From Trichosphaerium sp. ATCC 40318 (lineage: Eukaryota > Protista > Tubulinea), in contig JALMLS010000220.1 in NCBI GenBank assembly GCA_038496445.1, forward strand, positions 124,001-188,000: a stretch of DNA of 64,000 nt. Reading direction: 5' to 3'. Shown in pieces: positions 13,531-64,000 of this stretch (its first letter is position 1; each line of letters starts with the position of its first letter). A program made the position numbers and the translations under genes. The notes below the pieces were generated by a model that saw nothing but the letters and a program-made list of their open reading frames with translations, ran no database searches and was not told where the DNA came from.

Positions 13531-15303
13531 TCAATCTACAACATCCATGTCTACAAGTACCGTGTGGACACTTGCCAGTGCGTTCATACCTTTGTCTGTT
13601 ATATAGGTGGATATTAATTCAATCTTATGTACACCTGACAATTCTTTGATGCCTTTATCTGTTATATTAGTGTGGGATATATTAATTCCATGTACACCTG
13701 CCAATGCCTTCATACCCTCATTTTTTTTTTTTTTTTTTTTAAGTCTATGGTTTTTATTGGGATGTCTCACCATCCAGTATACAACATTGATGTTTTTCAA
13801 TCAGGTTTTACAACTTTACACAACTACAATGAAATTATATTTGTGGAGCACATTTCTGTGTTAAGGGTTTGAACCTTTCCATTCCAGCACCATGTATTAA
13901 TTTTCAAATGGCAGTCTATTTTTCTATTTGTATTTGAATCATCCATGTATGAGGGGGCTGACAACCGTATATTTTACCTTGCCTCTAGTCTGGAGATTGC
14001 TAGTTGTTTTTGTGGGTGGTCACCCAGGCACAGCATGCCTGGTCGTTCCCAAGAATCAAACCAACATCACTAGTCAATATCAACTCATTTATAAGCTTTC
14101 ATCCCATCATACCTGCCGCAACCCACTCTTTTGGGGGTTATCCGGTGGAATTTGGAATTGGCCAACAGCTTTTTAAAATGAGAAAGAATTTTCTCTTGAA
14201 GGGACTTGAACCAGGGACTCAATCAATTTAATTAATAGGAAAACCATTTAACTACAGGGACTGAACCTCTTCATACCCTCATCAGTTATTGATTCACAAC
14301 TCCTCAAGCAGATAGTGTGTACTCCTGCTAAAGCCTTCAAACCTTTGTCTGTAATATGAGTACATCCAATATCAATCTTATGTACACCTGCCAATGCCTC
14401 TATACCCTCGTCTGTTATTGACTTGCAATTTGTCAAGTTGATAGTGTGTACTCCTGCTAAAGCCTTCAAACCTTTGTCTGTGATATATGTACATGCCAAC
14501 TTAATCTTATGTACACCCGCCAATGCCTCTATACCCTCATCTGTTATTAATCTACAACTACTCAAGGAGATAGTGTGTACTCCTGCTAAAGCCTTCAAAC
14601 CTTTGTCTGTGATATATGTACATGCCAACTTAATCTTATGTACACCCGCCAATGCCAATATACCCTCATCTGTTATTGATCTACAACTACTCAAGGAGAT
14701 AGTGTGTACTCCTGCTAATGCCTTCAAACCCTTGTCTGTAACATGAGTACATCCAATATCAATCTCATGTACACCTGCCAATGCCTCTATACCCTCATCT
14801 GTTATTGACTTACAATTCCTTAAGCAGATAGTGTGTACTCCCGCTAATGCCATTATACCCTTGTCTGTTATTGATTTACAATTACTAAAGTAGATAGAGT
14901 GGACTCCTGCTAATGCCTTCAAACCCTCGTATGTTATTGATTTACAATTCCTCAAGTAGATAGTGTGTACTCCTGCTAAAGCCTTCAAGCCTTTGTCTGT
15001 AATGCGAGTACCTTTATGATTGATCGTATGTATACCCACCAACCAACTGTCTACAGGACGTGGTCCATTTAAGAAAATAATGGTATTCTGAAGTAAAGGA
15101 CTGCCAGAAAGAATTTTAAGTTCCTCATCGCTTTCAACATTGATTCTACGATATCCAATGTGTTTATGTACGATATTATGGAGTAAGTGGCACGTTTGTG
15201 CTGAACGGAGGGTAAATGTCCCAACTTTAAGAATATGAACTATTAATTCAACTGGGAGCGCTACAAGGCCGAATATGTACTTTTCTTTGCCGGCTCCTTC
15301 CAT
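13531..15303 (-). pseudogene. Intronless F-box-like/LRR gene (copy A), split by a SINE-like insertion
   Basis: LVALPVELIVHILK F-box-like start, then 21/22-aa LAGVHxIxLxxCxxITDxG repeats; removing 13708-14268 joins the 14248..15303 ORF in frame (EGMK|ALAGVH) to the 13531-13707 repeats, giving 403 aa. Confidence 0.9.
13721..14268 (-). mobile_element. tRNA-derived SINE-like retroposon (~550 bp) with poly(A) tail and target-site duplication
   Basis: TSD cttcataccctca(t) at 13708-13720 and 14269-14281; minus-strand A box TAGTTAAATGG (14254-14244) and B box GGTTCAAGTCCC (14212-14201); AATAAA (13758-13753) then A20 (13740-13721). Confidence 0.85.
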
Positions 15304-15565
15304 TTTGTTAGAAAAACCAATTAGTCTGTGTAATTGAAGGCAGCTAGCCTCCTGAATAAATACGAAGGTGTAACTCTATAAACAACTTAAAGTTGTGCCT
15401 TAAGCTGACTTAGTTCTTATCGATACATGTTGTCTTTCTGATACGTAAGTAGTCTTGCTTCTGGTGTGGCAGCTCTCGTACTTTAACGTCTATAAATTTT
15501 AACTGAAAAGTGGTATCTTGAATGTTACCAGCTGGGAAAAACAGAAAAGTTGAAGAAGAATTTAA

Positions 15566-17080
15566 ATGTCAAATTCCGCTTTTTGTTTCTTACGGACTAT
15601 TCAAAACTTACCTAATATGATACGACACACACCTAGAGAGCTCTCCGTAACGATACCAAATGGTTTAACCATAGGAGGACGTATTTGGGGCCAATCTACA
15701 GCAACAAATAAAGTATTATGCATACACGGCTTTTTAGACAACGCCGCAACGTTTGATGTGCTTATACCGCGCTTGTTAAACATCCTAGATGGTACGTATC
15801 AGTTTCCCGAATTATTTACCCGACGCTTTTCCGAAAACTACTTCAAACGCATATAAAATGCAGGGTTTGTGTTTCCAAGCGTATTTGCGGACAAATTGGT
15901 AAATTGGATTGTACCTTTACATAATCGCCTCAAATTACATGCTTACGCACTCGTAGAGCCTACAGAGTTTGTGTGCATGGATTGCGCAGGCCACGGAAAT
16001 TCCAGCCACAGATCAAAAGATGGGCAGTATTGTTATACCAATAGAGCTATGGATGCAATACAAGTCGCTACAGCGCTAGGATGGGATAAATTTTCACTCA
16101 TGGTAAGCAATAAATGCAAAAACTTTTTGCCAATTTTTTCTTTTTACACTTTTTTTTTCAACTGTTTAACTTTTTGATGAATAGAGTCATTCTATGGGTG
16201 CCAATACAAGTGTTTTGATAGCTGGTATTGTTCCCGATCGTATTATAAAAACAGTATGCATTGATTGCATAGGACCACCTACAAGAGAACTTGAAGAAAC
16301 AACAGGTACTTGGAATCAATTTATTTTTTTTTACACAATCGAATTGTTTTCTGTGAATTCTTGTCATATGATGCTTAGGCTACATTGTTTATTATTCATG
16401 CTTTAGTAATTTTTGTTTTATACTATTCCATATGTTCTATTGTCAGCAAACCGATTAATTATTGTTAGTGCTACTAAGGAAACACATTGAAATGCAAGAA
16501 AAAATGCTTAACAGAAAACGTAGACTATACAAAACAAGAGACGAAGCAGTTAGTCGTATAACTTCATTAAACCCATTCTTGAAACCAAGCTCAGCAACAT
16601 ATCTTTGTAATTATGGTATGAAGGAGGTTGAAGGTGGTACGTTAAACCTTTTCAAAACACGTGCAAAGCAACAATGAACGCAACTAATTTTTTTAAACAG
16701 GTTTCATGTTTAAGCATGATTTAAGACTTAGTTTCAGATTTCCTCCAAACCAAGGATACTCTCGCGAACAAACAGACCAATTTTTAAAAGCAATAACATG
16801 CCCTTTACTTCTATTTTGGGCTTCTCCAAATAAGCGTAATTATAAAGCCAACGAGCAACGGTACAGCATCAACTTATAGCTTTTTTTTTTCAATTGGTTC
16901 CTACCACTTTGATTTTCTTTCTTCTCGACTTCTCTGTGCTTACTTTTTTATAGTGCTCTTGAATATCAAGCTCTAATTAAAGATTTCAGAAAGATAAATG
17001 TAGATGCAGGCCATCATTTTCATCTTGATGAGCCAGAACTTTGTGATGAACACATTGCAAAATTTTTCTCAACCAAATAA
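15566..17080 (+). CDS. Serine hydrolase-like (SERHL-type) alpha/beta hydrolase
   Basis: CIHGFLDNAATF; MDCAGHGNSSH; nucleophile elbow M|SHSMGA; GHHFHLDEP; stop at 17080. Confidence 0.85.
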
Positions 17081-17652
17081 AATAGCTGTACATAAACTGA
17101 TTGAAAAATAAATTAAAACCTTGAAAATGTACACAGTACAGCATTTCAATAACTTATCTTGTAAGATTAGTTCACACGTATTGTACTATTTCAGAACTGT
17201 CGTATGTAATGATGTAGGGAACTGTTCCATATTCCAAAACGTAAGCTTTGTTAAAAATGCCAAGGCGATTTTGAGTCAGCTTCACTATCAAACTGCTTGT
17301 TACTTTTAGCTAGTTATTCCGGACTTTTTTTGCAATTATTCTTGTAACAAAACGTCCTAGTTTCCTTGTTTTGAAGAGTGCACTTTCACTTTATGTTTCA
17401 ATTTACATTTGCCTTTACTATTTTGTCACTTATTCTCCAGGTTTACCGTAAAACTGAGTTGTATTTCATTGAAATTGTTGTTTACACTTCTCGTCTTAAT
17501 CATAGTTTTCGCCAAAGGACGTTTTGTTTCAAAAATAATTGCAAATGTTGAGTGGTTGTGAACTAAACGAATGGAATTACTACAAGAGTTACGGAGAATT
17601 ATTTATTAGTACTGATGAATAGCGGGTAAATGAGAACACAAAATGGCATCCT

Positions 17653-18470
17653 TCAAAATATAAACGGAACTAATCTGTACTTCACAGTCTGTGTGTAATC
17701 CTTATATCCAGGCAACTCACGTTGAAGTGTAGTATCTTCCAAGTATGTTCGTAGAAGCAAAAGAAATAGAGAAACAGAGCATGCTATCCACCCATAAAAG
17801 CTTTGGAATAAAATAGCTGTCGAACAAAACTGCATAAACAAAAGCACATAACCTGGGTGTCGGATATACGCATAAGGACCTGATCTACAAACCTAGTAAT
17901 CTTTGTTAAACATGCGAACTGTTTTACATTAAAAAAAAATCACGTGATGTACAAAAAAGGTAAACGTCATACCTGATGGTTCCTGTCTTTCTGAATTCTT
18001 ACATAGGAGCTGAAAAACTTATTGATACGCATCAGACCATAAAACATTCCTTGTACAACTACAAACATAGCTCCACCAAAAAACTGTACATCCATAGTTA
18101 GTTTTAGAGCTTAACAGAAGAATTTGAACGTACTGCGATTGTTTTATCGTGTCCTTTGTTTGAATCAAATGCTGAGGCTATCGGTATCCCAATAAACCAG
18201 TTTACCATCTAGTTGTACAGTAGTAAGTACGTTAAAGGTATTTAAGGTTCAAAAGGCTTACCATGTAGTAAGCAAGGCTCAAATCCCATCTTTTTGTTGT
18301 TTTGTCTGTTGCACTATTCTTCCTCTCTTTTTTGACATCCGGAGGAACAATCTTTGCTCGGAGTATCTAGCACAAGCGTCAAACATGAAAAAAAGAAAAA
18401 AGATGTTCATCGTTTTTTTGCCATTTTTGTACGTACAAGACACACGCAGAAGCATGCTATATACGTCCAT
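17653..18470 (-). CDS. Isoprenylcysteine carboxyl methyltransferase (ICMT/PEMT-like) family membrane protein
   Basis: NKFFSSYVRIQKDRNHQ|VCRSGPYAYIRHPGY; RTYLEDTTLQRELPGYKDYTQTVKYRLVPFIF; start uncertain. Confidence 0.8.
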
Positions 18471-18599
18471 AGTGATTCCCAGAGTAATAAAGAATAGAGA
18501 AACTCTTGCATTGCGTTTGTTTGGTGTTAGTTGGGATAATGGCAATTGAACATCAGATACTAAATTGAGGAAATAGTCAAAGGAGTTCAGAGTTTTAAG

Positions 18600-18688
18600 T
18601 AGACAGGGTACAAAAACTAATGTTCAAATAAAACTCTTCAATAGACAGGGTACAAAAACTAATGTTCAAATAAAACTCTTCAATAGAC
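18600..18688. repeat. Perfect 42-bp tandem duplication
   Basis: tagacagggtacaaaaactaatgttcaaataaaactcttcaa x2 plus partial tagac. Confidence 0.95.
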
Positions 18689-18942
18689 CTGGAATCATAT
18701 TTCAAAGAGGTATTTTCCATGCCGATTCATATACCCGTATTTTGATTCGTAGTACAGCATCTCGCTCTGTGGCTTTTTTTAGTTAATCATTGATCGATTC
18801 AAATTAATTCGAACAGGTGGGATTTTTTAACACGTGCTACACTATGATACCAATTTGAAAAAAATTTGTTCGCTTTTGTTTGGCTGAAGTTTTTTTTAAA
18901 TTCTTGTTTACAATTCTCTAGTTTACAAAGAGAGTATATTAT

Positions 18943-33839: not shown

Positions 33840-36357
33840 ATGATTTCCAGCTTGTGTTTACGCATCGCAGTTATCGCTTGTGTACTAATTGTACACACTA
33901 CATATGGCGCGCTCGTAAGCACCTGTGAGCAAAACGGAAAGACGTATCGATTATACGATAGCGCAGCTTCAGGATGGGAAAGTACTTGTTCAGGAGGTAA
34001 ATACGACTAAAGGAAGCTCTGTGTATCTACAAACAAGCTAGCTAAACCTTTAAATGCTTTGAGCTGTACACTAAAAAAAACTGCTTTAGATTTCCATCCA
34101 GTAGCTATAACATCAATAGACGAAGCCATTGCCTTATCTAGTTTTCCTGTACGCTCTATTAAGGATGACATTCCTTTTTCAGTTCGAGAACTTCGTCGCC
34201 CAAAAAAAACGCGTTTATTGACGAGAAATAACGCTAATCAAATATTTAAACTACGTTCCGAAACTTCCTGCCAAAAAAGCCTCTTGCAATAACCCAAAAC
34301 AGATTTTAAATTACAAAACGCGTTTTTTCTTCTTTAGCGTACATCATTAAGCATGTTGGGAGCAATCTTCAACTTTTTTGTACCGCTAAAAAAAGGTAGT
34401 AAACTCCCCAAAAACAATCGGACATTTCTCCAACGTATTTTTTGTCATCACTAACTCATTTAAAATAGTATTTCCGCATTTCAGTCGCATCCGGTACCAC
34501 TTGGACACACGGTGGTATTACTATAATACCTGGGGTACATTATCCGTTTGATCCACCTTCCCCTGGTTGCAGTCAGTATGAGAAAGGAGTAAGGCGGATT
34601 TTTTTATTTTCACATACTTACAATTTTCCAAAAGGAAATAGTGGACGCTTGCACTGCAACTCATTTTGTTTGTGAGTCTGATGTATCAATTGGTGCCCCA
34701 AGCTGTATTCAAACTAGTTGGGACTGCACAACGGGAGCTGAAGTAACAGGGACATACAATGGTACGTTTTTTTGTTTTCGTATTCAATTGCTTACTTGTG
34801 TACGTTCTAGGTCATTGTTACTCAGTGTTTGATATACCAGAGTCAAAATATATGAACTTAGCTCTTTTGTGCCAACAGAAAGGAGGCTACCTTTCTGTTA
34901 TTACTGATGCCGCTGAAAACACTTACATTGCCGATGTGTTGCTCCCTCCAGGAGCTCCACAATTTAATGCTATTGGTCTAACTTCTTACGGGAGATCTAA
35001 TGTAGGAGATTTTGCTTGGGTACGCGATTAAAACGACGTAAAACTAAACTCGTGTTATTCCAAAAACGCACTAACACGTGTTTCAGCAAACAAGCCCAGT
35101 ACCTGAGCCTTTGGTATATGGATCAACCCCTAATGTAGCTCCTTGGGCTCCTGGCGAACCAGACGGCGGAAATGAATATTGCGGTTTCAAGTACGTTTTG
35201 TCCTGTTTTGTCGTGGTTTAGTGTACTGTTTTCTTATAGTTACTGATCCTTTTGATTAGATCAGCATGGGGTACCTGGGGAGATTACAATTGCCATTTAC
35301 CAGAGCTTGGTGAGGTAAAAATGCATGCACTTTGCGAGTTTGATTCTACTACAGCACCTACACCAGCTCCAACCACTCTGCCGCCAACCACAAATCCACC
35401 AACTACGCTGCCTCCAACAACTATTCCACCAACTACTGCACCGCCAACAACTATTCCGCCAACTACTGCGCCACCAACCACAAGTCCGCCAACTACGCTG
35501 CCTCCAACAACTATTCCACCAACCACTGCACCGCCAACAACTATTCCACCAACTACTGCGCCACCAACTACAAATCCACCAACCACAAACCCACCAACTA
35601 CGCAGCCGCCAACTACTCTACCACCAACTACATTGCCTCCAGTTGTAATACCAACAACTGCTTCACCAACAGATGCACCAACAACAGTTGCGCCTACAAC
35701 ACAACCTCCAACTACACTGCCTCCGACGACTGCTTCACCTACAACTGAAGCACCAACAACTGATGCCCCAGCCTTTGAATCTAAACCCCTTAGATTCCAA
35801 ACAGCGCCAATTTCAACAGTGTTGACTGACATCATTATGAGTGATTCAGAAAGAAAGCTTGAACTAGCTGAAGACGTCTATGTTGTAGGTACGTTAAAAA
35901 AGGTAGTCATTTTTTTTCCCCTTGTTAACAGTTTTGCGTTTTAGGAAACCTAGAGCTGCCTGAAGGTACTACTATACTATTTGGTGAAAGTGAGACAACG
36001 CTTCATATTGGTAACTGCTTAGAAGCTGAGAACCTAACCATTGCAGCAACTGAGACTGTACGTTCCATATCTGTCACTTATCCTGGTTTGTTGCCTTGAA
36101 AACTGATCTTTGTTATCAATTAGACTAAAGAAGTAACCTTGTCTTTTAATGACCATTGTGAAGATGTAGCACCTACTATAGTAACACCCCCATGCACTGT
36201 TTCACAGAGGAAGACAACACACTCTTTTGCAAGAACAATAGTTGTTTTCCAATTTGATTTATCAAAAAGCGGAGAATGTACTTCAGATACTATTCACTTG
36301 GTAGCTCTTTGGAGTTTAGCTATTATAGCATTACTACTTAACTACAGAATCAATTAA
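33840..36357 (+). CDS. Secreted/surface C-type lectin with Thr/Pro mucin-like stalk and hydrophobic C-terminus (possible GPI signal)
   Basis: Signal MISSLCLRIAVIACVLIVHTTYG; GHCYSVF...CQQKGGYLSVITDAAENTYI; WAPGEPDGGNEYC; WGDYNC; LCE; PPTTx repeats; C-terminal LVALWSLAIIALLL. Confidence 0.85.
35362..35770 (+). repeat. Coding 15-bp minisatellite (PPTTx units)
   Basis: ccaccaactact-type units encoding PPTTL/I/A/N/S/Q. Confidence 0.95.
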
Positions 36358-41193: not shown

Positions 41194-41947
41194 AACCAAA
41201 CAATGAAAAACAATGTTGTATCTTAGTTTTTGTTTGAAGGGATGTGGGTTAGTAAATGTTAAACACATCACTATCAATCTACATAATGCCTGTCTTTTGT
41301 TTAAATGTTAAAATAGAAGTAGTAATTAAAAGTACTTTAACACGTGACATATGTTAATGTTGTAGATCAGTACTGAGTGATATCTCAAACGAACCCCAGC
41401 AAGGTTTCAAAAAATGTTAACTAAGTAGCTTTTTGCTGTACAGGGTGCTGACACTCAACTAAGCTTATGATGCTTTCCCTGGACATATGATACATGCGAT
41501 CCAAACACCAAGTACATGTTCTCAAACTTGGGAAAGACAGATAGCAAATCGAAGAGTTCTATAAACCAAGCAAAAATTATTTTGGTACAAAAACCATATG
41601 TTTTTATTCGTTAAGTAATTGTAACCATATTACTGATGAATGTATTGAAGCGTTGACTCCACATCAATACTGTCAAGTTGTGGCTGTATTATTAACCTTG
41701 TGTTGCAGTACTCTTTTGGTGTATGTGCATTAATAGACAAAAATATGTTATGAAAAGTTGTACAAAATGTTAGATTCTTATCTGAAACAATAACTGACAA
41801 AAAAACACGTGCAATTTTTTTATGCGCATAACTGAAAGCGTTTATTGTACAAGTATATTTTCACAAGAAGTTTTTTTTACACAAGGTATTTAGGTAACTT
41901 TTTTTTTTATCGGAAGTTACAAAAAAATCGAATAATCAGTACTAACT

Positions 41948-44830
<2,883 letters not shown>

Positions 44831-44989
44831 AGATTGTAATTACTAATTTATTACACTCGATCAGTAATACGTCGATGTGTAAATAAACACCCAAGAGCTG
44901 TTACGATCGACTTTTGAATAAATTTGGACTCCACAAAACCAAATAAGGCAATATTTTACTATTCTACAAAAAACTATTTCTTTACAAAC

Positions 44990-45955
44990 TTATGAAGCTT
45001 CTCCAGCAGCCCTCAATGATATCAAGTCCACCTTCGTAGGCACACTAGTGGCGCCAAGGAAAAAGTCGTAGATTACATGATGTTCAATATTCAATGCCGC
45101 CTCCTGCAGCTCGTCCAGGAACTTGTACCCATCAACTAACGATCTGACTGTTGCAATAGGTACTACAAGCGTTGCATCGTCTGGGTTAATGATCGCAACA
45201 CGCAATTCATAGGCTGTCAGCATCGTTTGACGTTTTTGAAGGACGAAGATATTTTTCCATGTTTTGACCTCGTCTACCCATTTGTATAGCGTCTGGCTCC
45301 CTACTCGTTGCCTCTCCCGTAGTTTAAGTGTTGAAGGCTTGAAATTAAACCAGGATGACACTTTTGTTTCGAATACAGCGCTTGGCATCTTGTCTTCTAC
45401 TACAACTTCGCATTTGCCTTCGGTTACTGATTCACATAAATCCGTCCATTCTTTTGTTGTAATATCATCCAGAGGGTGTATTTCGTACTCTTTTTTATTC
45501 TTTTTGGGCGTCAGGAAAGCGTAAATTATTTTTCCCGTATTTAAAGTACAGCGGACCAAGAATACAGAGAGGATGGTTGGAACAACTACTGGTGTTACTG
45601 CGCACGCTGCTGTCCCAATAGTGACGGCGGTTGGTACGACAGTTGCGGTGAGGGTTGTAGTAGCTGAGGCACCAACCACACCTACCAATGCTGACGCAAC
45701 TAGTTTTCCAACGCCATTTAATAGTGTTGCGCCTACAGGACTGCTCATAACTCGAGCTACAAGCACTGTCCACACCCATAGCGTCAAAGCCGTTTTTTCT
45801 GAGCCGCTAGCTTTGTGTAAATTGAGTTCCTTCGATACTCCAGTAATTTCCCCAGCAGCTGATGCGCACGCGTGTGTGAGGGTTACAGGAACAAGCGTTG
45901 TTCCTATAGTAACCCAAACAACATCGCCGACCGCTGCGGGTAAAGCAAGGGCCAT
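44990..45955 (-). CDS. Intronless 321-aa protein of unknown function with Ala/Val/Thr/Gly-rich hydrophobic N-half
   Basis: Uninterrupted ATG-to-TAA ORF; no motif recognised. Confidence 0.7.
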   Translation of the reverse strand: MALALPAAVGDVVWVTIGTTLVPVTLTHACASAAGEITGVSKELNLHKASGSEKTALTLWVWTVLVARVMSSPVGATLLNGVGKLVASALVGVVGASATTTLTATVVPTAVTIGTAACAVTPVVVPTILSVFLVRCTLNTGKIIYAFLTPKKNKKEYEIHPLDDITTKEWTDLCESVTEGKCEVVVEDKMPSAVFETKVSSWFNFKPSTLKLRERQRVGSQTLYKWVDEVKTWKNIFVLQKRQTMLTAYELRVAIINPDDATLVVPIATVRSLVDGYKFLDELQEAALNIEHHVIYDFFLGATSVPTKVDLISLRAAGEAS

Positions 45956-46185
45956 AATTCAATAGTTTTCTTCCGAAACGCTTTGTTTGGTAGAATTGCA
46001 GTTTAGTTGACTTGACCAACCAAGTTTTAGGTCACCCTAGTAATATTAGACATACAAAAGGTACGTACTCCGTAAGGCTCAAACGTACTCCGAGCACTTT
46101 GTAAGGCGTTTAGCTAAACAATGATCGCCTTTTACATTTCTTGTGTTTTTTATTCGTACCAACATAACTGTAGTACGCAATCGCT

Positions 46186-47811
46186 ATGACATCACTTCTC
46201 CTGGACGCTCTCCCGGTAGAGATTCTAACGATGATCATTGACAATGACGTTGAGAGCTATATTAAATGGCCTGTACTTTGTCGCTACACCGCTTTAACGC
46301 GTTTCGATGACTCATTTCGCAAATGCGGCGTGTTTAAAACAGCTTGGCGTTCTGGAAGTCTTCGTAAACGTTTTAGCTTCAAAGACGGTAAGCCAGATGG
46401 ACTTTGCATTTCGTGGTTCGATGGCGGTAACGTTTCCGAGCGCGTACTTTACAAAAATGGCCAAAAACACGGGGAGAGTACTCAGTGGTCCAGAACCGGT
46501 CAGATGCTTAAACAGGGCTCCTACTGTAACGGAAAGCTGCACGGGGACAGTAAAACGTGGACAGTGGAAGGTAAATTAGAGTCAGAAGGAAAATACGAAA
46601 ACGGTTTGTGTCTCGAGTATTTGGACACTAAAAAGGGAAGGTTAACAAAGAAATCGTATAAGAACAGCGAACTAGAAAAACGAGTCATCTTTGACGCGAA
46701 AACGAACAAAAAATTGTATGAACGTACACGTGTTGGCAGTGATTTATTCCAATCTATTAAATATGATAGCGATGGTTTTGTTGTTCGTAAATATACTGAA
46801 ACAGGGCAAGGTAAGTTTGAAGGAAAGTATGAAGAGTGGTATACAAAAGATTCCCCGAAAGAACAATTTTTCTATGTTGATGGAAGGAAAGAAGGCGAGT
46901 GTAAGGAGTGGTACACAAATGGACAAATGAAACTGTTGTTTGGTTGGTCAAACGAGAAATTTGATGGTAGATACGAGTCGTGGTTTATCAATGGTCAACG
47001 TAATATTAAAACAACCTACAGCAACAACAAAAAAGATGGGGAGTATAAACAGTGGTTTGAAGATACCGGAAAATTACAAGAACATAGTTTCTACAAAGAC
47101 GATAACCTTCATGGTAATTTCAAGACATGGTACCATAACGGACAAATAAGGAGGAGTTGTTTCTATGTAAATAATTGTCTGGAAGGAGAGGATATTGAAT
47201 GGCATGATAATGGTATTATTTACTCGAAAGGTTTTTCTAAAAATAGGTTAAGAAAAGGAAGATTGATAACTCAATACAGGGATGGTTCTCTCACACAAGA
47301 AGAGTTTTATGACGACAACGGGAGAATTACAGGAGAAAAGAAACGCTGGCATAACAATGGCAAATTAGCTAGTAAGACATTGTACAAGGATGGTGATGCT
47401 GTTGGAAAAGTGGTAAGTTGGTATGATAACGGACAAGTACAATGTGTTGAATGTTATTCTGATGGTGAGCTAAACGGGTTATTCCAGAGCTATTACAGCG
47501 ATGGACAGAAATCATGTGAGATTTTTTATCATAACGGAACAAGAGGGTGTGTTACACGTTGGTATCCTGACGGTACTATAAAGCATAAAACTTTTAATAG
47601 TATAGAATGTATCGATACAAGCGGAAAAAATGGACCAAAGTATTGTGATGCATGTGAAGAAGTTGAATGTAAAGAGTATCATCAGAATGGCAAAGTGAAG
47701 ATGGAATACGTTTATTTTAGAGGGTATAAGAAGAAAGGGAGTATTGTAAGTGAGTATGACGCTGATGGATCATTAATAAGCAAGCAAACTTGGAGATACA
47801 GCAATCGTTAA
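46186..47811 (+). CDS. Intronless F-box-like + MORN-variant (YwqK-type) repeat protein
   Basis: LLDALPVEILTMII...LCR at the N-terminus; many GxxxxWYxNGQxxxxxxYxxGxxxG repeats. Confidence 0.9.
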   Translation: MTSLLLDALPVEILTMIIDNDVESYIKWPVLCRYTALTRFDDSFRKCGVFKTAWRSGSLRKRFSFKDGKPDGLCISWFDGGNVSERVLYKNGQKHGESTQWSRTGQMLKQGSYCNGKLHGDSKTWTVEGKLESEGKYENGLCLEYLDTKKGRLTKKSYKNSELEKRVIFDAKTNKKLYERTRVGSDLFQSIKYDSDGFVVRKYTETGQGKFEGKYEEWYTKDSPKEQFFYVDGRKEGECKEWYTNGQMKLLFGWSNEKFDGRYESWFINGQRNIKTTYSNNKKDGEYKQWFEDTGKLQEHSFYKDDNLHGNFKTWYHNGQIRRSCFYVNNCLEGEDIEWHDNGIIYSKGFSKNRLRKGRLITQYRDGSLTQEEFYDDNGRITGEKKRWHNNGKLASKTLYKDGDAVGKVVSWYDNGQVQCVECYSDGELNGLFQSYYSDGQKSCEIFYHNGTRGCVTRWYPDGTIKHKTFNSIECIDTSGKNGPKYCDACEEVECKEYHQNGKVKMEYVYFRGYKKKGSIVSEYDADGSLISKQTWRYSNR

Positions 47812-48415
47812 CTTTTCACTGTAGACTCAAAAGCCGAAGTTTAAGTCAATTGTTTACACATTAATAAATTAGAATTCTACTGTTACAATGTAATGACCAA
47901 CAATTGGATATCATTGTACAACATACTTTACTTTAATCATAACAACAGAAATTCAAAAACAATTATGAGACAATGCTTTGACCAGAGAGAGGGGGCAGGG
48001 ATAATATATATACTACCCTAAATTATATTATTTACTAAAACACTACAACTTTGTAAAAGACCACTCACGTTTGGTAGTAAACACGTGACTTTCTACTCTT
48101 ACCATTACATTAATTAATCAATATTAATATTTCAATCAGATAGCTTGCTGAGTCTCAAAAGGGTTGCCTATACAACAACCCATCTTAAAAGACTAGATTT
48201 AGAATTAGCTAAAAATAGCATTACTTCAACCCAAATTTTGTTTCATTTTATTGCCTCGTTTAGTAGCAGCAAAATAGCTACAAAGTCCAAAAGAAATATC
48301 TAACTCTTTATTGTGATACAGTGATTGGTATCATCACTAAGCGCTGACTTTAACTCATTTTTCACATTGGCAACGAAATCAGTGAAGCTGACACATACCA
48401 TGAGACTTGCAGTAG

Positions 48416-49531
48416 CTAAAAATCGCGCGACCAGTTACAGTCAGCATCATTGCAGTCTAGATAGTCAATCATTCTCTGTGTTATTTGAGTATTTATATAA
48501 TGAATGTAGTCAATGCTTGTTAAATTCCTAACGCCATCATCAGTGATTTGTAAACATTGGTTTAAACATATTTCCTTAACACCAATAAGACTGCTCACTC
48601 CTTTGTCTGTTATGTTTCGACATTCGCAGAGGCTAATGAATTTAACACCAACCAAGTATTGTAATCCTTTATCTGTCACAGATGTATGATCAAGCAAAAT
48701 TGTATGTACTCCAGCAAGTGCCTTTAAAGTACTATCGTCAACACAATCAAGCTCTGAAATATCTATGACTTTTACACCTGCCAATAGTTTTATCCCGTCA
48801 TTTGTTACTGATCTACAACCACACAAGTCAATCTGATGTACACCTGCCAAACATGACAGTGTGTCATCTTTCAGTTGTGAACAATTATACATATCTATAC
48901 AAGGTATACCAGCCAGTAGTTTCAACACATTGTTTGATATCTGAGAGCAACTGTCAAGATTAATTTTTTTGATTTTGTTTGTTGTTTGATTTTGTGTTAA
49001 CAGGTACTTTACTCCTTCGTCTGTAATTTTGCTACATTCACTAAATGATATTGCGCTTGCATTTGTTAGCGCTTTTACACTTTTATCTGTAATATCACAT
49101 CCATCAAGCTGTATTTTGTGTACACTACCTGAAATAGCAATAACACCTTTATCAGTGATGTATCCACAATATGATAAATTAATAGTATGTACTCCAGAGA
49201 GTGCTTCAAGACCTGCATCCGTTACATCTATTGTTGAAATATCAATTGTATGAATGCTACCAGATAGATTTTTAAAGTCATCATCAGCCATTGGAATATT
49301 GATAATAGTTATTTTGGTATTTTTTAAAAGAGGACTTCCGTTCAGCTTGAGTAGATTTTCTCTTGACCTGACATCCACCTTAAAATACCCCAAATGCTGT
49401 AAAATGATTGTAGAAAAGAGTTTACAAACAAATGTTGCAGATATACGGCATTTCTTGCCCAAGAACACCAGAATACAAAATATAATTTCCATTGGCAGAT
49501 ACAGTAATTCTAATGGCCTACGAATACTCAT
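48416..49531 (-). CDS. Intronless F-box-like/LRR protein (copy B)
   Basis: ATG at 49531; LLYLPMEIIFCILVFL...FVCKLF; LxGVxxIxLxxCxxITDxG repeats. Confidence 0.9.
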   Translation of the reverse strand: MSIRRPLELLYLPMEIIFCILVFLGKKCRISATFVCKLFSTIILQHLGYFKVDVRSRENLLKLNGSPLLKNTKITIINIPMADDDFKNLSGSIHTIDISTIDVTDAGLEALSGVHTINLSYCGYITDKGVIAISGSVHKIQLDGCDITDKSVKALTNASAISFSECSKITDEGVKYLLTQNQTTNKIKKINLDSCSQISNNVLKLLAGIPCIDMYNCSQLKDDTLSCLAGVHQIDLCGCRSVTNDGIKLLAGVKVIDISELDCVDDSTLKALAGVHTILLDHTSVTDKGLQYLVGVKFISLCECRNITDKGVSSLIGVKEICLNQCLQITDDGVRNLTSIDYIHYINTQITQRMIDYLDCNDADCNWSRDF

Positions 49532-49624
49532 ATTAGTACTACAAAAAGAGGCTACTAATTTGAGCAACAAACAGCTTAATTTATGGCGCACAATACGTAC
49601 TCTGAAGATTGAAGCATCGCTTTA

Positions 49625-49781
49625 GCTGCAAATGTTGTTCAAGGTCGTGATTTCTACAAACACAACCAAAACGGCTTTCATAGAATACGACAAAACTGTC
49701 AGGAATGGTTTTGAACTAACGATAATCTGGTCAACTCCAGTGTGAACATAATTCAGACCTACCTTGAACAACATTTACAGC
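49625..49781. repeat. 21-bp inverted repeat (1 mismatch) flanking ~115 bp upstream of LRR copy B
   Basis: gctgcaaatgttgttcaaggt (49625-49645) versus accttgaacaacatttacagc (49761-49781). Confidence 0.85.
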
Positions 49782-50165
49782 AATCACGTGATTTCCTACA
49801 ACAATGCTGTAAAAGAGGTTTCGCCATTAGACTGTGTTATTTTTCAAAACGAACAGGCTACTTCAATATTTAAACCCATTCTTTGTAGTGCCCTGTACTT
49901 ACACGTTAACAATGGGCTGTAACAAAAATTGGTTCGTGAACAGCTAGCCTTAAAGTAGTTTAGTGTTCTTATAACATTCGTACATTCTCGGTAACATGAG
50001 AGATCAGTACGTAATGATAAACATCGAAATAATTTGTTTAAGAGACATAAACAAAGTTTGTTCCGATATACAGGTAACATCAAAATGATTGTTATAACGC
50101 TGGCAGTAGCTGAATGTAGTTGTAATTTTATTTATCTCGACAAAAAACAAAACAAATAATACGTG

Positions 50166-53100
50166 CTACCATTGCTTATTACTTCTTCTTCGCTTGGAGT
50201 TGTTATTATACCTTTGTAAAAAAAAAATTAACAAGTGAAACGAATGGAAAAGAAAGACAATAACAACACATACGATCCTCCTGAATACCTCCTTCTCTTA
50301 TGGCTTCTGCGTGTATCAGATGACTGAGGTTTAATATAACTACCATCACTCTGAAGACCACTACGTCTTGTAGGTGGACTTCTTTCTCTACCACTTGAGC
50401 GCCTCTCAACAACGATTTCTCTCTTCCCAGTATTTCCACGTCCACTTCTGGAACTCTCTCTAGAGTCTCCGTTAGACCCACCATGAGATTGATCCTCTTT
50501 ATCGCGCATCGTCAGGCTTATCCTCCCTGCAAACAAATTAGCATGAAATTTTCATCTCGATTTTTTTTTCTCAAAACTCTCACCTCTTTGTATCTTTGTA
50601 ACACGCACAGATAATATCTGTCCAATCTTTAAAACATCACATACATTATCACAATTAGGTTTAACTTGAGAATGATGAAGTAAGCCATCCTGACCAACGC
50701 CAATATCACAAAAAGCACCAAAATCAGTCAAGTTAGTTACTTTTGCTTCAACAACAGCATCAACAGCCAAGTCTTCAACTTTTTTGATTTTCTTTCTAAA
50801 AATCGTCTTTGGAAAGTCAACACGTAGGTCCTCTTCATATCCACTAAGTGCTTTTATCATATGAGCAAAAGTTAAAAGTCCAACATTGTTCTCTGTAGCC
50901 CATTTTACTTCTTTCGCCATGTTTATATTTTTTAGTTTTTCTAACATTTCTCTTCGTTCCTTTGAACCTTCCTCAAATAGTACTGGTTCATACTTACCCA
51001 TAAGATGTTCTAAAAAAGACTCAACCTTGTTGTAAGATTCAGGGTGAATTCCAGTAGCATCTAAAGGATTTGAACCGTTTAGGATACGTAAGAAACCGCT
51101 TGCTTGTTGAAAAACTTTATCATTTACTCCTGATACTTTTTTCAATTGTTCTCTATTCTTAAACTTTTTTATCTTATCTCTGTAGTCAACAATATCATCC
51201 GCTATGTCCTCAGTCATACCTAAAATAAAAAATCTAAGAACAAAAGAAGAACACACAAAAACACGTGACGAAGACGGTCAGACAACCAAAAAAAAAGAAA
51301 ACAAAAACAATAAAAAAGAGCAATACCAGAAATATGTTGAAGTAAACAAGCACTTGCTACGTTCAGGTTGGCACCAACATCATTAACACATTGTACAACA
51401 ACATCATGAGAAGCTTCCTTAAGTGTCTCTTGGTCAACATCATGTTGATACATACCAACACCACAAGACTCAGGTGGAATCTTAACCTACAAGAAAACAA
51501 CATCAACAATAAAACAATACTTTACCACACTTTATCAAAAAAACAAGCGTACGCACCAACTCACTAAGAGGATCTTGAAGTCTTCTTGCAATAGAAATTG
51601 CACCTCTGTAACTTATGTCAATATGTGGAAACTCCTCTTGCGCAATCATACCAGCGGAGTACACTACATAACTCGTTGAATATTTTGACTCTCAAGAGAG
51701 AGCAGAACGCTAAAAATACATACCAGAAGCTCCAGTTTCTGAAACGATTGCGTATTTTAACTTTCTACCCACAGATGTTTTTGCATCACGTATAGCATTA
51801 CTTACAAATTCTTCTGTTTGTCTACAGCCCTGGCCATTTCCAATGGCTATAACATTCACATTATGCTAGAAATAGTACACATTAGACACCAGTTCTTAGT
51901 TCAAGCAAAAAAGCAGCAGGTTGAGAAAAGGAAAAAAACAAACTGAACGCTACCTTCATCGCAAGCTCTAACATCCATGTTGTAGCATATGTAGTATCAC
52001 TCTTTGGCGGCAAAGGAAATATTTTATCAAATCCTAAGAGTTTACCATGTTTATCGACAATGGCTAGCTTGCATCCATGCTTAAAACCTTAAACTAAAAG
52101 TTAAGTTGAAAAAATCAAAAAAAAACATCACCTGGATCTAAAGCAAGAACACATATATCGTGTACTGGTGGTGCTAATAGTATACTCCTTAAGTTTCTTC
52201 CAAAGACTGTAACAGCATGTGCTTCACTTGTAGACCGTAATTCTTTAAATACTTCTTTAGAAAACAAAGGATGAAGGTACTCCGTAAATGCAGTACTAAC
52301 AGCATCTTTTAGAATTTTTGATATCTGAAAAAAATAAAAAAATAAGAACACAGCGAGCATTCGTTGTCATTGTCTAAATGACTTGTTACCTTTGTACATG
52401 ATCTACCTCTTTTAAGTTTATCTACATAGTGTTTTTCAATACTTGTGAGAAGGATAGACTCGTTTACTGTCAAGGTTAAACTTAGTGCTTTCTCTTTTTC
52501 ACTAAATACTTTAGTAATTGCTTAAACAAAGTTATGTGTTGTACCCTCTAAATAGTGCCAATGCTTGATGTGGTGCCACCTGATCTAATGATTTCTTCCA
52601 CTTGAAGTATGCTTTGTAGTTTTGTGCTGTTCTTGATCGTTCATTACTACGCCTACTGCACAGTGTAGCTACATGCACTCAGTTCACAATGCCAACCTTA
52701 CACTTTTGTTATCGTACCTGTACCATAATATCTACGTAACTCCTTCTTAAGATAAGTAGAAGATGCTATTGTCTCAGCTAGTATCATCACTACACCGTCC
52801 ATGATATATCCATCCCTAGTATCTTTTCCAAAATCGGACAGAGCTTTATCAAATTCTTCATCTGATATTGTTGTAGTGTTCCACAACATCTAATTCATGA
52901 ACCTGAATAATCACGTGACAAAATATAAAAAACTATACCTCTGCGAGTTTGTCACAACCTTTTTCTCTAGCAGCAGAAGCCTTAGTTTGTGTCTATAAAC
53001 AGTTAGAAATGACTTTGTTTCAAGTTCGTAAAACCATGTTGAAAGGAGCAATAATATCCTCCAATTCATTCATATTCCACGTATTCGCAATTTCCATGCG

Positions 53101-55387: not shown

Positions 55388-57822
<2,435 letters not shown>

Positions 57823-58337: not shown

Positions 58338-59450
58338 TCAAAAAGCAGGCCATTTGATTCTGTCCATTGTTTTGCATCCTAGAGATTCAATCATCTCCTT
58401 TGTTATTTGAGTACTTGAATAGTTAATGTAATCAAGACTTGTTAAATTAACAACACCATCATCAGTGATTGATGAACAGCCTTTTAAAGACATTTTCTTA
58501 ACACCAATAAGACTGCTCACTCCTTTGTCTGTTATGTTTCGACATTTGCAGAGGCTAATGACTTTAACACCAACCAAGTATTGTAAGCCGTCATCTGTCA
58601 CAGATGTACTGTCAAGAAAAATAGTATGTACTCCAGCAAGTGCCTTTAAAGTACTATCATCAACACAATCAAGCTCTGAAATATCTATGACTTTTACACC
58701 TGCCAATAGTTTTATCCCATCATTTGTTACTGATCTACAACCATACAAGTCAATCTGATGTACACCTGCCAAACATGACAGTGTGTCATCTTCCAGTTGT
58801 GAACAATTATACATATCTATACAAGGTATACCAGCCAGTAGTTTTAACACATTGTTTGATATCTGAGAGCAACTGCCAAGATTAATTTTTCTGATTTTGT
58901 TTGTTGTTTGATTTTGTGTTAACAGGTACTTTACTCCTTCATCTGTAATTTTGCTACATTCACTAAATGATATTGCGCTTGCATTTGTTAGTGATTTTAC
59001 ACTTTTATCTGTAATATCGCATCCATCAAGCTGTATTTTGTGTACACTACCTGAAATAGCAATAACACCTTTATCAGTGATGTATTCACAATATGATAAA
59101 TTAATAGTATGTACTCCAGAGAGTGCTTCAAGACCTGCATCCGTTACATCTATTGTTGAAATATCAATTGTATGAATGCTACCAGATAGATTTTTAAAGT
59201 CATCAGCCATTGGACTATGGATAATAGTTATTTTGGTATTTTTTAAAAGAGGACTTCCGTTCAGCTTGAGTAGATTTTCTCTTGACCTGACATCCACCTT
59301 AAAATACCCCAAATGTTGTAAAATGATTGTAGAAAAGAGTTTACAAACAAATGTTGCAGATATACGGCATTTCTTGCCCAAGAACGCCAGAATACAAAAT
59401 ATAATTTCCGTTGGCAGATACAGTAATTCTAATGGCCTACGAATACTCAT
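58338..59450 (-). CDS. Intronless F-box-like/LRR protein (copy C), close paralogue of copy B
   Basis: Near-identical to 48416-49531 including 5' flank; diverges in exposed LRR positions and C-terminus. Confidence 0.9.
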   Translation of the reverse strand: MSIRRPLELLYLPTEIIFCILAFLGKKCRISATFVCKLFSTIILQHLGYFKVDVRSRENLLKLNGSPLLKNTKITIIHSPMADDFKNLSGSIHTIDISTIDVTDAGLEALSGVHTINLSYCEYITDKGVIAISGSVHKIQLDGCDITDKSVKSLTNASAISFSECSKITDEGVKYLLTQNQTTNKIRKINLGSCSQISNNVLKLLAGIPCIDMYNCSQLEDDTLSCLAGVHQIDLYGCRSVTNDGIKLLAGVKVIDISELDCVDDSTLKALAGVHTIFLDSTSVTDDGLQYLVGVKVISLCKCRNITDKGVSSLIGVKKMSLKGCSSITDDGVVNLTSLDYINYSSTQITKEMIESLGCKTMDRIKWPAF

Positions 59451-60389
59451 ATTAGTACTACAAAAAGAGGCTACTAATTTGAGCAACAAACAGCTTAATT
59501 TATGGCACACAAGACGTACTCTGAAGATTGAAGCATCGCTTTAGCTGCAAATGTTGCTCAAGGTCTGTCTGAATTATGTTCACACTGGAGTTGACCCAGA
59601 TTGTCGCTAGGTCAAAACATAAATGGTGTTTGTAGAAATCACGTGATTTCCGCCACACAAACAAAACCAAAACGGCTTTCATAGAATCGACAAAACTGTC
59701 AGGAATGGCTAAAAGCGTGCTGGAATGTGACAAATCTGACCGATCTTCTTCTTGTAAGTTCTGCTATTCATACATTTCTTGAATAAAATACCAGTTTGCA
59801 TTTTGTAGATTTTTTCAATTAACAGTGTTTGCGACGTATAATACCTTTTCTCATTCGTTTTTAGCTACCTATGATTTCTGTGGCTTGAATCTACTATTTA
59901 CGCACCTGCTAAGGTAATGGCTAGACAGTGAGCTGACATAGAAAATTTGGTACACGACCTTATGTAAGCCATATTAAATTGACAGTTCAATCAGTCACAG
60001 TATAATAGGCCTAAAACTAATTTGTGGTATCCAAATAAGCGTACAGAGTACTTGTAAGGATCTACAGCGATATAGACATCAAGCGGAGGGCATTGTTTTT
60101 CTAATTAAACACATATTTCCTCAGAGTGTTTTGAAAGTATTGATTCTGCAGCTGATATGTCTGCCTCAAAGGCCTTTCAGCGCTTTACATCACAGGAACA
60201 ATTGGCATAGAGGCTATTAACGCTTGAGCAGAATCCATTCTCTTGCTGTTTAACGACCCCATCCTTTAAAATGATGCTTTCTAAAGATACACTAAAACGC
60301 AAAAGAAATGTATAAAGAACTTGTGAAACTTTAAACTCTTAGTTGGTTTAAGCACGTGGGTTGTTTTGAAGAAGTTGAATGTTTTTTAT

Positions 60390-62315
60390 TTAACTTGCTT
60401 GTAGCACTTGAAATGATGGATACATATCTGGCTTTGCAATAAACCCTGCTTTGTCCCATGTAGCTCCAGGTGCTAAAAATCATGAGTTTTTTAACACACA
60501 GTAAGGTTGATTACCGATAGATTGCTTAATTGCCACTTGTAATTTTGTTGGCGTTTGCGACACAACTGTCATCTCCCAGCTCTTACTTACAGTAACTCCA
60601 TATGCACCTACACAGATTCAGAATCTCGACTTTTCTTTTTTTTTTTCGTACCTTTCCCGAAGTTGATGTCCATTGTAATTGAGTTTATTGTCTTTGACCC
60701 AATATTTTTTATTGCTAAGTAATATGTTGCTCCTGAACTGAAGCATGACTGCTTTTCAACAGATACTGAAACACTACTGCACCCTATTGAAAACATAAAA
60801 TCAGACTCGAAAAAACCAATATTTTTTTGGCGGTACTCCAAAAAGTAAACTTACCTTGACACTCGCACCCACTGCCAGAGTACCCTGAATCGCACTCACA
60901 AACACCTCCATTGCATGTACCCTTATCATTACATCCTTGTGGGCACATTGATTGATCTCCAACACATTTTTCACTATCACGTGATTAGTTTTGATATTTT
61001 AGTTCATTCGCCTCAAATAAAAAAAAGAAAAGTCACGTGCCTTATAGAAAAATCTGTAAAGTATGCATGAACATCTTTTTGTGTTGCCCATGAAGGATCA
61101 CCACCTCCAAAGAAAGTAGAAAAGAAAATACCATTGATTCCCAATCCAGGAATTGTACGCATTTTAAGACCACCTACAAGGGAAAAAATGGTTGGATTAG
61201 GCGTTACACGCACAAACTTGCTCAAAGTAGCTCAGAAGGCTTTGAGGAAATAACTTTTAAACATCCTTTGACGCTGGCTTTGGCGGGCGGTGAGAAGGAG
61301 TTTGCGGCTTTGTTTTTTTTCTTTTTTCTCTATTTAATTATTCGTACCAATGTCTGCTTTCTTAACGCCATCTACCCATACCTGAAATCCTCCATTGGAT
61401 TCATTAGGATCGTTCAAGACTACTTGTTGTTGGACTTGCTGCCATGTTCCTGGCTTGAACCAAAATAAACCTCTTCCCAACGATTGTCCATCTGAAGGAT
61501 TACATACTGTCCAACACTATTGAGATATTGGTTACTATGAGTACGCTCAGATACAGATACTTACTTGATCGCATTGTGTTGAGTTTAGAGGTAGGATATA
61601 ACCATAAACTTCACCTGTATGAGTGGTTAGAAGGACGAGAGTCACTAGACAAAAAACACCGCACCTGCGCCGTCAGTTCTGAACATGAATCGTGACGACC
61701 AACAATCATCTCCGGCGGGCTCCTTACCGCCACGGCATTTATTAAACTCTTCTCCTGGTGCTGTACCAAAGAATCCGGGTAACTTTCCGCCCTTGACGAA
61801 ATCGAAGCCTTTTTCAAACATCAAGTAATAACTAAAGAAAGGTGTCAATTCTATCACGTTGTGGATTCATTTTCTTTTTGAACCTTAGGCATAGCGTTTT
61901 AGGATACGGCTTTATAGGTGAAGATACCCACTGTGTACCTCCCACAATATCACCGTGAGGGGCATAGCTACCTGTGAAGTGTTAGTAAAGTTAAACTTTT
62001 CGAAAGAAAAAGAGGTCACCTTTTGGATAAAGTACACGCAAAACTTGTCCGAATTTATTTAAAGGGTCGCTCACTATGGCTCTATTGGACTCTCCAAAAC
62101 TTCCTATAATTGCTGTTAAGCTAAACCCGACGAGTATAAAAGAATTAGAGGTACCACTACTGCTTATATTCCAATGCTGCTCCCAGTTTCCCGTAAAATT
62201 GCCATTCCATATTTGTTGCGCGTTAGATACACCCAAAACGATAATGATGAACGCCAAATGCTATATGAAGTGTAAACGTAGCGAAAAACTTGCGTTAACG
62301 TACTATTTTGTGCAT
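60390..62315 (-). CDS. Secreted polysaccharide lyase family 14 with EGF-like and probable CBM49-like C-terminal domains
   Basis: Signal MHKI|HLAFIIIVLGVSNA; VLRVLYPKG; FDFVKGGKLPG; WSSRFMFR; GIFFSTFFGGGDPSWA; CPQGCNDKGTCNGGVCECDSGYSG; SKSWE...QVAIK. Confidence 0.85.
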
Positions 62316-63252
62316 TGTTGTCACGTGCTAAAATAAGACAATCTTTTCAAAAAAGTACGCTAAGATTCGGTCAACAGGAGTATGTTTGAATCGTACGCTG
62401 GACAGGTTAGTACCTGTTCAATCAAAGACAATGGGGCCAATAATGGTAATTAAAACAATGGGAGTCCGTGGTTTGCCAAATTGGCTGTTTGAAGTAACCT
62501 AACAAGGTTTGGCTGCAGCGTAAAAAATAGACTTCAACCGTACGGTAGACAACATTTCAAGACAGTAAAAATTGATAATTACAGCATAGGTTTGTACCCA
62601 TTTTCTTTTTGGCCCTAAAACAGCCCAACATTTACGAACTTTTATTGTTTGCACTACAAACGCTTTCCTTGAATGCAAAAACGCGAAAACAAACGTTCCA
62701 GCAATGATTTAAAAACGTGAAGCGGTATTTTATGTACAGTAAAAGTTGAGCCGGCTTTATCACGTGGTAGATCACGTGAGGATGATTTTTAACAAAAAAC
62801 AAAGAATAAAACTATAAAAAGATGTAAAATCGAATACGTACGCTACTGTTTCGTTCCATAAAGGTCTATTAGTATTATCGATAACGCATGGGTCGCTATC
62901 CCCTGTAATGTCCATGTTGGGTAGATTCTCTGTAGCAAGAAGTAAGTTAAAAACTTAGTTCGTACGTCTTCGATAGGATTACACGTGTGTACCTGCAAAC
63001 ATTAACCTAACCCACACATGATACTCTCCTTTACTTGTCATATCGTTTTATAAACGTGTAACAGCTCAGAATGTGTAAATATAGTATGAAAAATAACTTT
63101 TTTTTGAAAAGCGTGGAACACAGATTGTAAAGAATTCCGATAACAGAATCTTAACCGATACTGCAGGCGTGTAAAAACTGATTTTCTTAGCAACTAGTGA
63201 ATCTTATTTATGATGCTACCAAATTCGAAATGTAGTCCAAAGCATAACTTTA

Positions 63253-64000
63253 TTAATAACTCTCAAAAAAACTTGGCCAGAAGCCCCCTGTTTCTACATC
63301 CTCTACTAGATTTTCAACCATCTCGTCTGTTATTTGGGTGTTACTATATTCAATTTGATGAAGGCCCTTTAAATTAACAATACCATCATTTGTGATTTGT
63401 GAGCACCCTCTTAGGTTAATTCTCTTAACACCAATAAGACTATTCACTCCTTTGTCAGTTATAAGCTTACAGTCACAAAGGCTTATGACTTTAACACCAA
63501 CCAAGTATTGTAATCCTTTATCTGTCACAGATGAACCATTAATCAAAATTGTATGTACTCCAGCAAGCGCTTTTAAAGTACTATTGTCAACACAATCAAT
63601 ACCGAAAATATTTATGACTTTTACACCTGCCAATTGTTTTAGCCCATCATTTGTTATAGATGTGCAATAACTCAAGTCAATGTGATGTACACCAACTAAA
63701 CATGATAGAGTATCATCTTTTAGTTGTGTACAACCATACATCTCTATACATGGTATACCTGCCAACAGCTTTAGTGTATCGTTTGATATTTGAGTGCAGA
63801 AATCAAATTTAATATTTTTAATCTTCTTTGTTGTTTGATTTCGTGTCAATAAATACTTTACTCCTTCATCTGTAATTTTCTTGCAGGCATTAAAAGCTAT
63901 GAAACTTGCATTTGTTAGTGCTTTTAAACTTTTATCAGTAATATTACAATAAGAAAGCCGTATTTTATGGACATCACGTGAAATGGCAATAACACCTTTG
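63253..64000 (-). CDS. Intronless LRR protein (copy D); 5' end beyond window
   Basis: Colinear with copies B/C (ITDEGVKYLLTRNQTT...LAGIPCI...); more diverged. Confidence 0.9.
   Translation of the reverse strand, partial: KGVIAISRDVHKIRLSYCNITDKSLKALTNASFIAFNACKKITDEGVKYLLTRNQTTKKIKNIKFDFCTQISNDTLKLLAGIPCIEMYGCTQLKDDTLSCLVGVHHIDLSYCTSITNDGLKQLAGVKVINIFGIDCVDNSTLKALAGVHTILINGSSVTDKGLQYLVGVKVISLCDCKLITDKGVNSLIGVKRINLRGCSQITNDGIVNLKGLHQIEYSNTQITDEMVENLVEDVETGGFWPSFFESY

Follow-up and report, generated by a model that had tools for sequence, protein, structure and literature searches.

The window analysed here, a 64-kb stretch of the genome of the amoeba Trichosphaerium sp. ATCC 40318, carries four genes that encode an F-box followed by leucine-rich repeats (LRRs), referred to below as copies A to D, all of them on the minus strand. 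A sequence-only reading had placed four LRR genes here and proposed that they form a dispersed repertoire acting through the SCF (Skp1–Cul1–F-box) ubiquitin ligase. The four genes are borne out by the listing of open reading frames (ORFs) and by tblastn, which found no further family copies in the window at E<1e-3. It is well supported that they belong to a lineage-specific family of FBXL-type F-box/LRR adaptors with fast turnover. The features of the four copies are as follows.

13531–15303, minus: copy A, whole, split by a retroposon
14269–15303, minus: copy A, 5' part, with an F-box-like N-terminus, linker (GSPLLQNT) and ~12 LRRs (ORF and translation; LRR_6 E 2.5e-41)
13721–14268, minus: retroposon resembling a short interspersed nuclear element (SINE), 548 bp, with a 20-nt poly(A) end (sequence read directly)
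13531–13720, minus: copy A, 3' part, final three LRRs and stop codon (translations)
48416–49531, minus: copy B, intact ORF of 371 aa with F-box, linker and 12 LRRs
48416–48574, minus: copy B, divergent tract (codons 320–371), of older or different ancestry
49518–49617, minus: copy B, probable true 5' end, with ATG at 49615–49617, exon 1 to 49601 and an 83-nt GT..AG intron at 49518–49600
49601–49810, minus: 5' cassette of copy B, common to B and C (5' untranslated region (5'UTR) or promoter region)
58338–59450, minus: copy C, intact ORF of 370 aa, 89% identical to B in protein
58338–58496, minus: copy C, divergent tract (codons ~319 onward)
59437–59720, minus: 5' end of copy C, with the shared cassette, ATG at 59534–59536 and an 83-nt intron at 59437–59519
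63253–64000, minus: copy D, C-terminal 248 codons, 69–71% identical to B, open up to base 63999

Domain organization and predicted fold

The copies are laid out as an F-box, a conserved linker of ~45 aa carrying a GY..., GSPLLxNT signature, and 12–15 cysteine-containing LRRs of 21–22 residues with the consensus LAGVHxIxLxxCxxITDxGLxA. Matches of the repeats to the Pfam family LRR_6 are strong (E 1e-12 to 2.5e-41). The full-length proteins score for the F-box only marginally in Pfam (E 1e-3 to 1e-4); when only the N-termini are scanned, B (22.4 bits) and C (26.4 bits) exceed the Pfam F-box cut-off of 20.5. The F-box core, LPxE(I/L)xxxIL with VCK, is kept between the window genes and their ~35%-identical relatives from MMETSP. 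A family profile made from the four copies and their best database matches can be aligned with human FBXL2 starting at the F-box (E 6e-49), which places the family F-box on that of FBXL2, and also with FBXL17.

The fold was tested on an AlphaFold2 model of copy B, with a mean pLDDT (predicted local distance difference test) of 87.6 and a pTM (predicted template modelling score) of 0.80. The model comprises three N-terminal helices (residues 6–47) and 12 LRR strands at pLDDT above 90, and its best Foldseek matches are the FBXL2–SKP1 and FBXL17 complexes. Pfam, profile and predicted fold thus agree with the claimed F-box/LRR identity and specify it as FBXL-type.

FBXL2 and FBXL17 (PDB 6o60, 6w66/6wcq) are the best matches of the family by both sequence profile and fold, and share with it an N-terminal F-box followed directly by cysteine-containing LRRs with a ...C..ITD.G... 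motif. The window family differs from them in its repeat length (21–22 aa, theirs ~26), in its own GSPLLxNT linker and in an identity of only ~20%. FBXL proteins are conserved single orthologues, whereas the window family is multi-copy and turns over fast.

Mosaic ancestry of copies B and C

Copies B and C had been described as nearly identical in DNA, including the 5' flank. This holds from ~200 bp upstream of the ATG, where the 5' similarity ends, to codon 319, but beyond codon 320 the two differ by 30%, against 2.8% before it. The maximum chi-square method places the breakpoint at codon 320, with a value not attained in any of 1000 permutations (p<0.001). Across the breakpoint the synonymous divergence (dS) between B and C rises from 0.05 to 0.33–0.58, that is ~7–10 times, to a level like that separating either copy from D. 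The last repeats and tail of B and C have a different history from the near-identical tract. The 3' flanks of the two genes do not align, and the limits of the similarity on both sides imply that the young or converted tract is a compact unit.

This bears on the peptide examples quoted for B, C and D, all of which are found in the alignment. The most divergent of them, EICLNQCLQ versus KMSLKGCSS, sits in the older tract, beyond the breakpoint and where dS is also raised, and the divergent B/C examples are therefore no sign that a young duplicate has changed rapidly. To a large extent, the apparent hypervariability reflects mosaic ancestry. A 44-nt run identical between B and D (codons 283–297), lying inside a low-dS stretch, hints at further exchange between paralogues.

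The conserved 5' flank would be explained by the presence there of the 5'UTR, exon 1 and the 83-nt intron. The genes had been called intronless, which is true of the long uninterrupted body but probably not of the 5' end, where an RNA-like contig of a paralogue skips 49518–49600. This interval starts with GTACGT and ends with TAG, as do other introns seen in the region, and its splicing puts the upstream ATG at 49615–49617 in frame with the protein body, as read directly from the sequence. In B the intron holds the ATG used by the ORF reading, and its sequence is also present in C; a single short intron is thus probable at the 5' end of the B/C gene type. Immediately 5' of exon 1, at 49625–49795 and 59544–59650, lies an inverted-repeat remnant of ~75–85 bp with a CACGTG (GAAATCACGTGATTTC) palindrome, the arms of which are split between the copies (left in B, right in C). 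It could be a miniature inverted-repeat transposable element (MITE) or a shared promoter module.

The variable strand face

The LRR register was set on the strand motif and agrees with the predicted strands of the copy B model. In the near-identical part of B and C (repeats 1–10), 7 of the 50 residues at xxLxLxx positions are changed versus 4 of the 175 elsewhere in the repeats (Fisher 0.003). The corresponding counts are 30/50 versus 36/175 for B and D (Fisher 3e-7) and 31/50 versus 36/175 for C and D (Fisher 1e-7). The proposed concentration of amino-acid changes on the xxLxLxx face is therefore confirmed, as is the near fixity of the framework (ITDxG, LAGVH).

The rates give a more qualified picture. 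The ratio of exposed nonsynonymous divergence (dN) to pooled dS (Nei–Gojobori) is 1.10 for B–C, 0.85 for B–D and 0.96 for C–D, against 0.20–0.22 in the framework, and overall the exposed ratio is 0.74–1.10 versus 0.17–0.22 for the framework, these being estimates by site class with wide error. The internal repeats of copy A behave alike (exposed ratio 0.87, or 2.7 on very few synonymous sites). The dN/dS of exposed positions is thus higher than that of the framework (about 0.8–1.1 versus ~0.2), but a value above 1 is not shown. The framework ratio of ~0.2 indicates purifying selection and argues against pseudogenes. The strand face evolves at about the neutral rate, in a relaxed or neutral-like manner, and diversifying selection is not shown; with so few sequences, a neutral-like face may reflect either relaxed constraint or a mix of positive and purifying selection.

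Disruption of copy A, truncation of copy D and family turnover

The claim that one copy is disrupted is substantiated by copy A, which is split by the 548-bp poly(A) retroposon, inserted in the orientation of the gene and flanked by a 13-bp target-site duplication (14269–14281 and 13708–13720). The frame of copy A stops at 14248 because of this insertion, and the same frame resumes past the second copy of the duplication. A tRNA was not recognised in the element by ARAGORN or Rfam, and a tRNA-derived origin is unsupported by these two programs. Within copy A, 14273–15003 is a tandem array of a 129-bp unit (5.6 copies, 84% identity), each unit encoding one 22-aa and one 21-aa repeat; the array is a recent amplification inside the gene.

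Copy D is present from 63253 to the end of the window. Its frame is open up to base 63999, and the gene is therefore cut by the window edge and carries no breaking mutation, so that D is truncated and not broken. Possible relics of the family had been suggested at 58.0–58.3 kb; these are not supported, the low-stringency tblastn matches there being insignificant (E above 1). Elsewhere, a single cysteine-containing LRR-like 24-mer (..SLSNCNHITDECIEAL) is found at 41584–41655 on the plus strand (tblastn E 0.05), which could be a chance match or a stray exon of an intron-containing LRR gene.

The four copies in the window show a multi-copy family with gain and loss, and the birth-and-death features that had been proposed are present in the form of a young or converted pair (B and C), an older copy (D) and a copy killed by a transposon (A).

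Transcription

Three small public runs from one sample were used, and contigs from them were mapped to 44800–50500. The contigs cover the genic parts of this interval and leave 47856–48600, comprising an intergenic gap and the 3' end of copy B, bare; they also skip short intervals with CT..AC ends, which are minus-strand GT..AG introns. The runs behave as RNA in that their contigs skip introns and leave intergenic DNA uncovered. Over the whole of its span, one 648-nt contig agrees with C at all 14 sites where B and C differ by substitution, and it has the 3-nt deletion of C; it therefore derives from copy C, and copy C is expressed. Transcription is in this way borne out for C by an exact contig, given the RNA-like behaviour of the runs. 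Further contigs match the window copies at ~10% mismatch, which shows that additional paralogues are expressed.

Neighbouring genes

Tail to tail with copy B and ~600 bp from it, a transcribed 541-aa ORF of MORN_2 repeats occupies 46186–47811 on the plus strand. Its homologues are distant (21–29% identity) MORN_2 proteins, mostly bacterial or unnamed. The N-terminus looks F-box-like by eye (LPVEIL), but an F-box was rejected, with no Pfam match at E up to 1. On the minus strand, one RNA-like contig (44938–46556) runs from a 321-aa ORF (44990–45955), which has an Ala/Val/Thr-rich N-terminus and no Pfam family, upstream to 46556 through two short GT..AG introns (46114–46159 and 46225–46276). This contig overlaps the first 370 nt of the MORN gene in antisense orientation and could represent a long 5'UTR or a longer protein overlapping its neighbour. 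Further away, at 35252–35944 on the plus strand, an ORF contains a long run of mucin-like TTxPPTT repeats, of which a G/V-rich ORF on the opposite strand is the mirror.

Relatives and comparable systems

No protein above 50% identity was found among 1.8 billion cluster representatives, and consequently no larger codon data set for site models could be assembled. The best word-indexed match is 32% identical. The best relatives, at only ~35% identity, come from the transcripts of a single MMETSP protist and from the F-box/LRR genes of giant-virus-like contigs. Repeats that differ in copy number can only be aligned arbitrarily, and kinship was therefore judged from the non-repetitive N-terminal signature in preference to an LRR tree. 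The full signature of F-box and linker recurs at ~35% identity in several proteins, two of which were traced (one JGI sample; one also filed as an MMETSP transcript). One signature-bearing contig has a poly(A) end and 38% GC, and the signature also occurs in one environmental contig.

The top repeat matches lie on AT-rich (22–23% GC), densely packed contigs with several LRR_6 paralogues, and these contigs carry either Nucleocytoviricota-like PolB or topoisomerase IB and DUF5889. In the ESM Atlas, the clusters closest to the family are F-box/LRR_6 families that belong mostly to Nucleocytoviricota. Of the N-terminal profile, the virus-like proteins match no more than the F-box core; they are without the linker signature, and a pattern scan of IMG/VR with copy B gave no confirmed relative. 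Two metagenomic scaffolds of ENA ERZ23491536, giant-virus-like and with 23% GC, encode PolB, LicD, a family-25 glycosyltransferase and a 1455-aa Eco57I-like protein, together with at least four adjacent LRR_6 paralogues.

The GC content at third codon positions (GC3) is 0.23–0.26 in the window genes and 0.23 in a neighbouring host exon. Host-like GC3, the intron, the retroposon insertion and the spliced host neighbours indicate that these are nuclear genes and no recent viral insert or contamination. Viral nearest relatives together with residual viral composition or viral neighbours, as expected of endogenised giant-virus genes, were not found, though the family may have an ancient viral origin.

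Several known systems resemble the window family in part. Giant-virus families and the NEX1 family of Neochlamydia (PMC4209131) also have an F-box followed by LRRs of ~22 aa with an xCxxITDxGLxxL motif and many paralogues per genome, and in NEX1 a conserved stretch of ~50 aa likewise separates the F-box from the LRRs. They differ in being parasite effectors that are thought to hijack the host SCF, whereas the window genes are nuclear host genes; identity to the window family is at most 33%, and the giant-virus-like proteins are without its linker signature. F-box/LRR expansions are described more generally in amoeba-associated Parachlamydiaceae (PMC4209131). The GALA/RipG proteins of Ralstonia (PDB 9j7j) join an F-box to an LRR solenoid of short repeats (template modelling score ~0.65), and the family profile matches the chain; these are bacterial type III effectors with 24-aa GALA repeats, and no specific sequence relationship to them was found. 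The F-box families of Caenorhabditis and plants (PMC8120010, PMC3030570) are large, clustered and lineage-specific, combine a conserved F-box with a variable substrate domain, and have been assigned a proposed anti-pathogen role (Thomas 2006). Their recognition domain is mostly FTH/FBA, kelch and similar, and positive selection has been demonstrated in them, unlike in the window family, where exposed-site omega is ~1. No paper describing this particular family was found.

Function and origin of the family

Overall, the data are best explained by a lineage-specific, expressed family of FBXL-type SCF adaptors that is turning over fast, a reading that we consider probable. The N-terminal F-box would dock on Skp1–Cul1, while the 12–15 short LRRs would form a solenoid, the variable concave face of which would serve as the substrate-binding surface. 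Domain identity, fold, mosaic structure, rate classes and the transcription of C are shown by the analysis; the window proteins are inferred to assemble into SCF complexes and to ubiquitinate bound targets, which could be endogenous or foreign. Turnover proceeds, on this reading, by local duplication of a compact unit of ~1.3 kb (5' cassette, short 5' intron and coding body), by gene conversion or recombination between paralogues, yielding mosaic genes, by amplification of repeat pairs within a gene, and by loss through transposon insertion. Near-neutral evolution of the strand face would let binding specificities drift or diversify freely.

Several observations weigh against this explanation. 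The N-terminus of copy A reaches 19.9 bits for the Pfam F-box-like family, under its cut-off of 24.3; the F-box region of the copy B model is of only moderate confidence (pLDDT 60–70); the repeats, at 21–22 aa, fall short of the 26-aa canonical FBXL repeat; and dN/dS by site class is drawn from three or four sequences. The library type of the runs is not on record, their RNA nature being deduced from the contigs, and an exact contig for copy B was not found in the three runs, in which contigs cannot show absence. The low F-box confidence, together with the marginal F-box scores of the full-length proteins (E 1e-3 to 1e-4), would also fit the absence of any SCF action, the F-box being degenerate and the proteins plain LRR scaffolds or inhibitors. 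Alternatively, most copies may be dispensable products of genomic drift, as has been proposed for plant F-box families (PMC3030570), which is consistent with a binding face that changes at a neutral-like rate and with one copy (A) that is already dead. Both versions are very unlikely given that the LPxE(I/L)xxxIL and VCK core is kept as far as the MMETSP relatives, that B and C clear the Pfam cut-off when their N-termini are scanned by themselves, that the profile aligns the F-box with that of FBXL2, and that the framework evolves at a dN/dS of ~0.2. The interpretation favoured by the sequence-only reading, an immune-like repertoire, holds that viral or endosymbiont proteins are captured by diversified LRR faces and delivered to the proteasome via SCF, and that the repertoire is kept by diversifying selection and possibly by shuffling of LRR modules. 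The concentration of changes on the xxLxLxx face, the mosaic genes and the amplified repeats in A are in its favour. Amoeba parasites, both giant viruses and Parachlamydiaceae, deploy look-alike F-box/LRR families (PMC4209131, PMC5753266), which makes an arms race over the same pathway conceivable. The concept also has precedent in nematodes and plants, Thomas (2006) having interpreted expanded F-box families with variable substrate domains as a means of targeting foreign proteins, as cited in PMC3417536 and PMC8120010. However, exposed-site dN/dS is ~1 and not above it, the most striking variable stretch also has high dS and so a different ancestry, and any set of LRR paralogues would be expected to vary at its x positions around a fixed framework once ligand constraint relaxes. 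An immune repertoire, which is an existing hypothesis and no new kind of system, is neither supported nor excluded by these data, and we regard it as unlikely.

Concerning origin, viral F-box/LRR genes and the neighbouring F-box-like/MORN genes may have been endogenised, gained introns and host composition, and multiplied, their role being secondary; in the mirror version, viruses captured the host family. Amoebal giant viruses have repeat-protein families that include LRR and F-box proteins (PMC5753266), and F-box and MORN are the commonest domains among putative viral gene transfers in Trichosphaerium (PMC10521059). The best LRR scores fall on the contigs with PolB, topoisomerase IB, DUF5889 and LRR_6 paralogues, the nearest ESM Atlas clusters are mostly from Nucleocytoviricota, and the 22-aa repeat type is common to the window genes and the virus-like proteins. 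The identity to these proteins is only 28–33%, however, and lies in the repeats, which inflate scores, whereas the full N-terminal signature is confined to one environmental contig and to transcripts with poly(A) tails from a single MMETSP protist. A viral source is likewise at odds with the host-like GC3 of the window genes, their spliceosomal intron, the retroposon insertion, the host neighbours and the lack of a relative in the IMG/VR scan. The direction of transfer is not readable from these data, and a giant-virus origin appears improbable.

At present, therefore, the window genes stand as a well-supported annotation of a lineage-specific adaptor family, and an immune system is not demonstrated. 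It is quite unlikely that expressed SCF adaptors form a repertoire across the whole genome of the amoebozoan host, the faces of which would be re-assorted by conversion and LRR-module exchange and which would tag giant-virus or symbiont proteins for degradation. If true, such a repertoire would be the host-side mirror of the parasites' own F-box/LRR effector families. The window family provides a concrete gene set on which to ask whether protists use SCF adaptors defensively, and it also bears on who borrowed F-box/LRR genes from whom.

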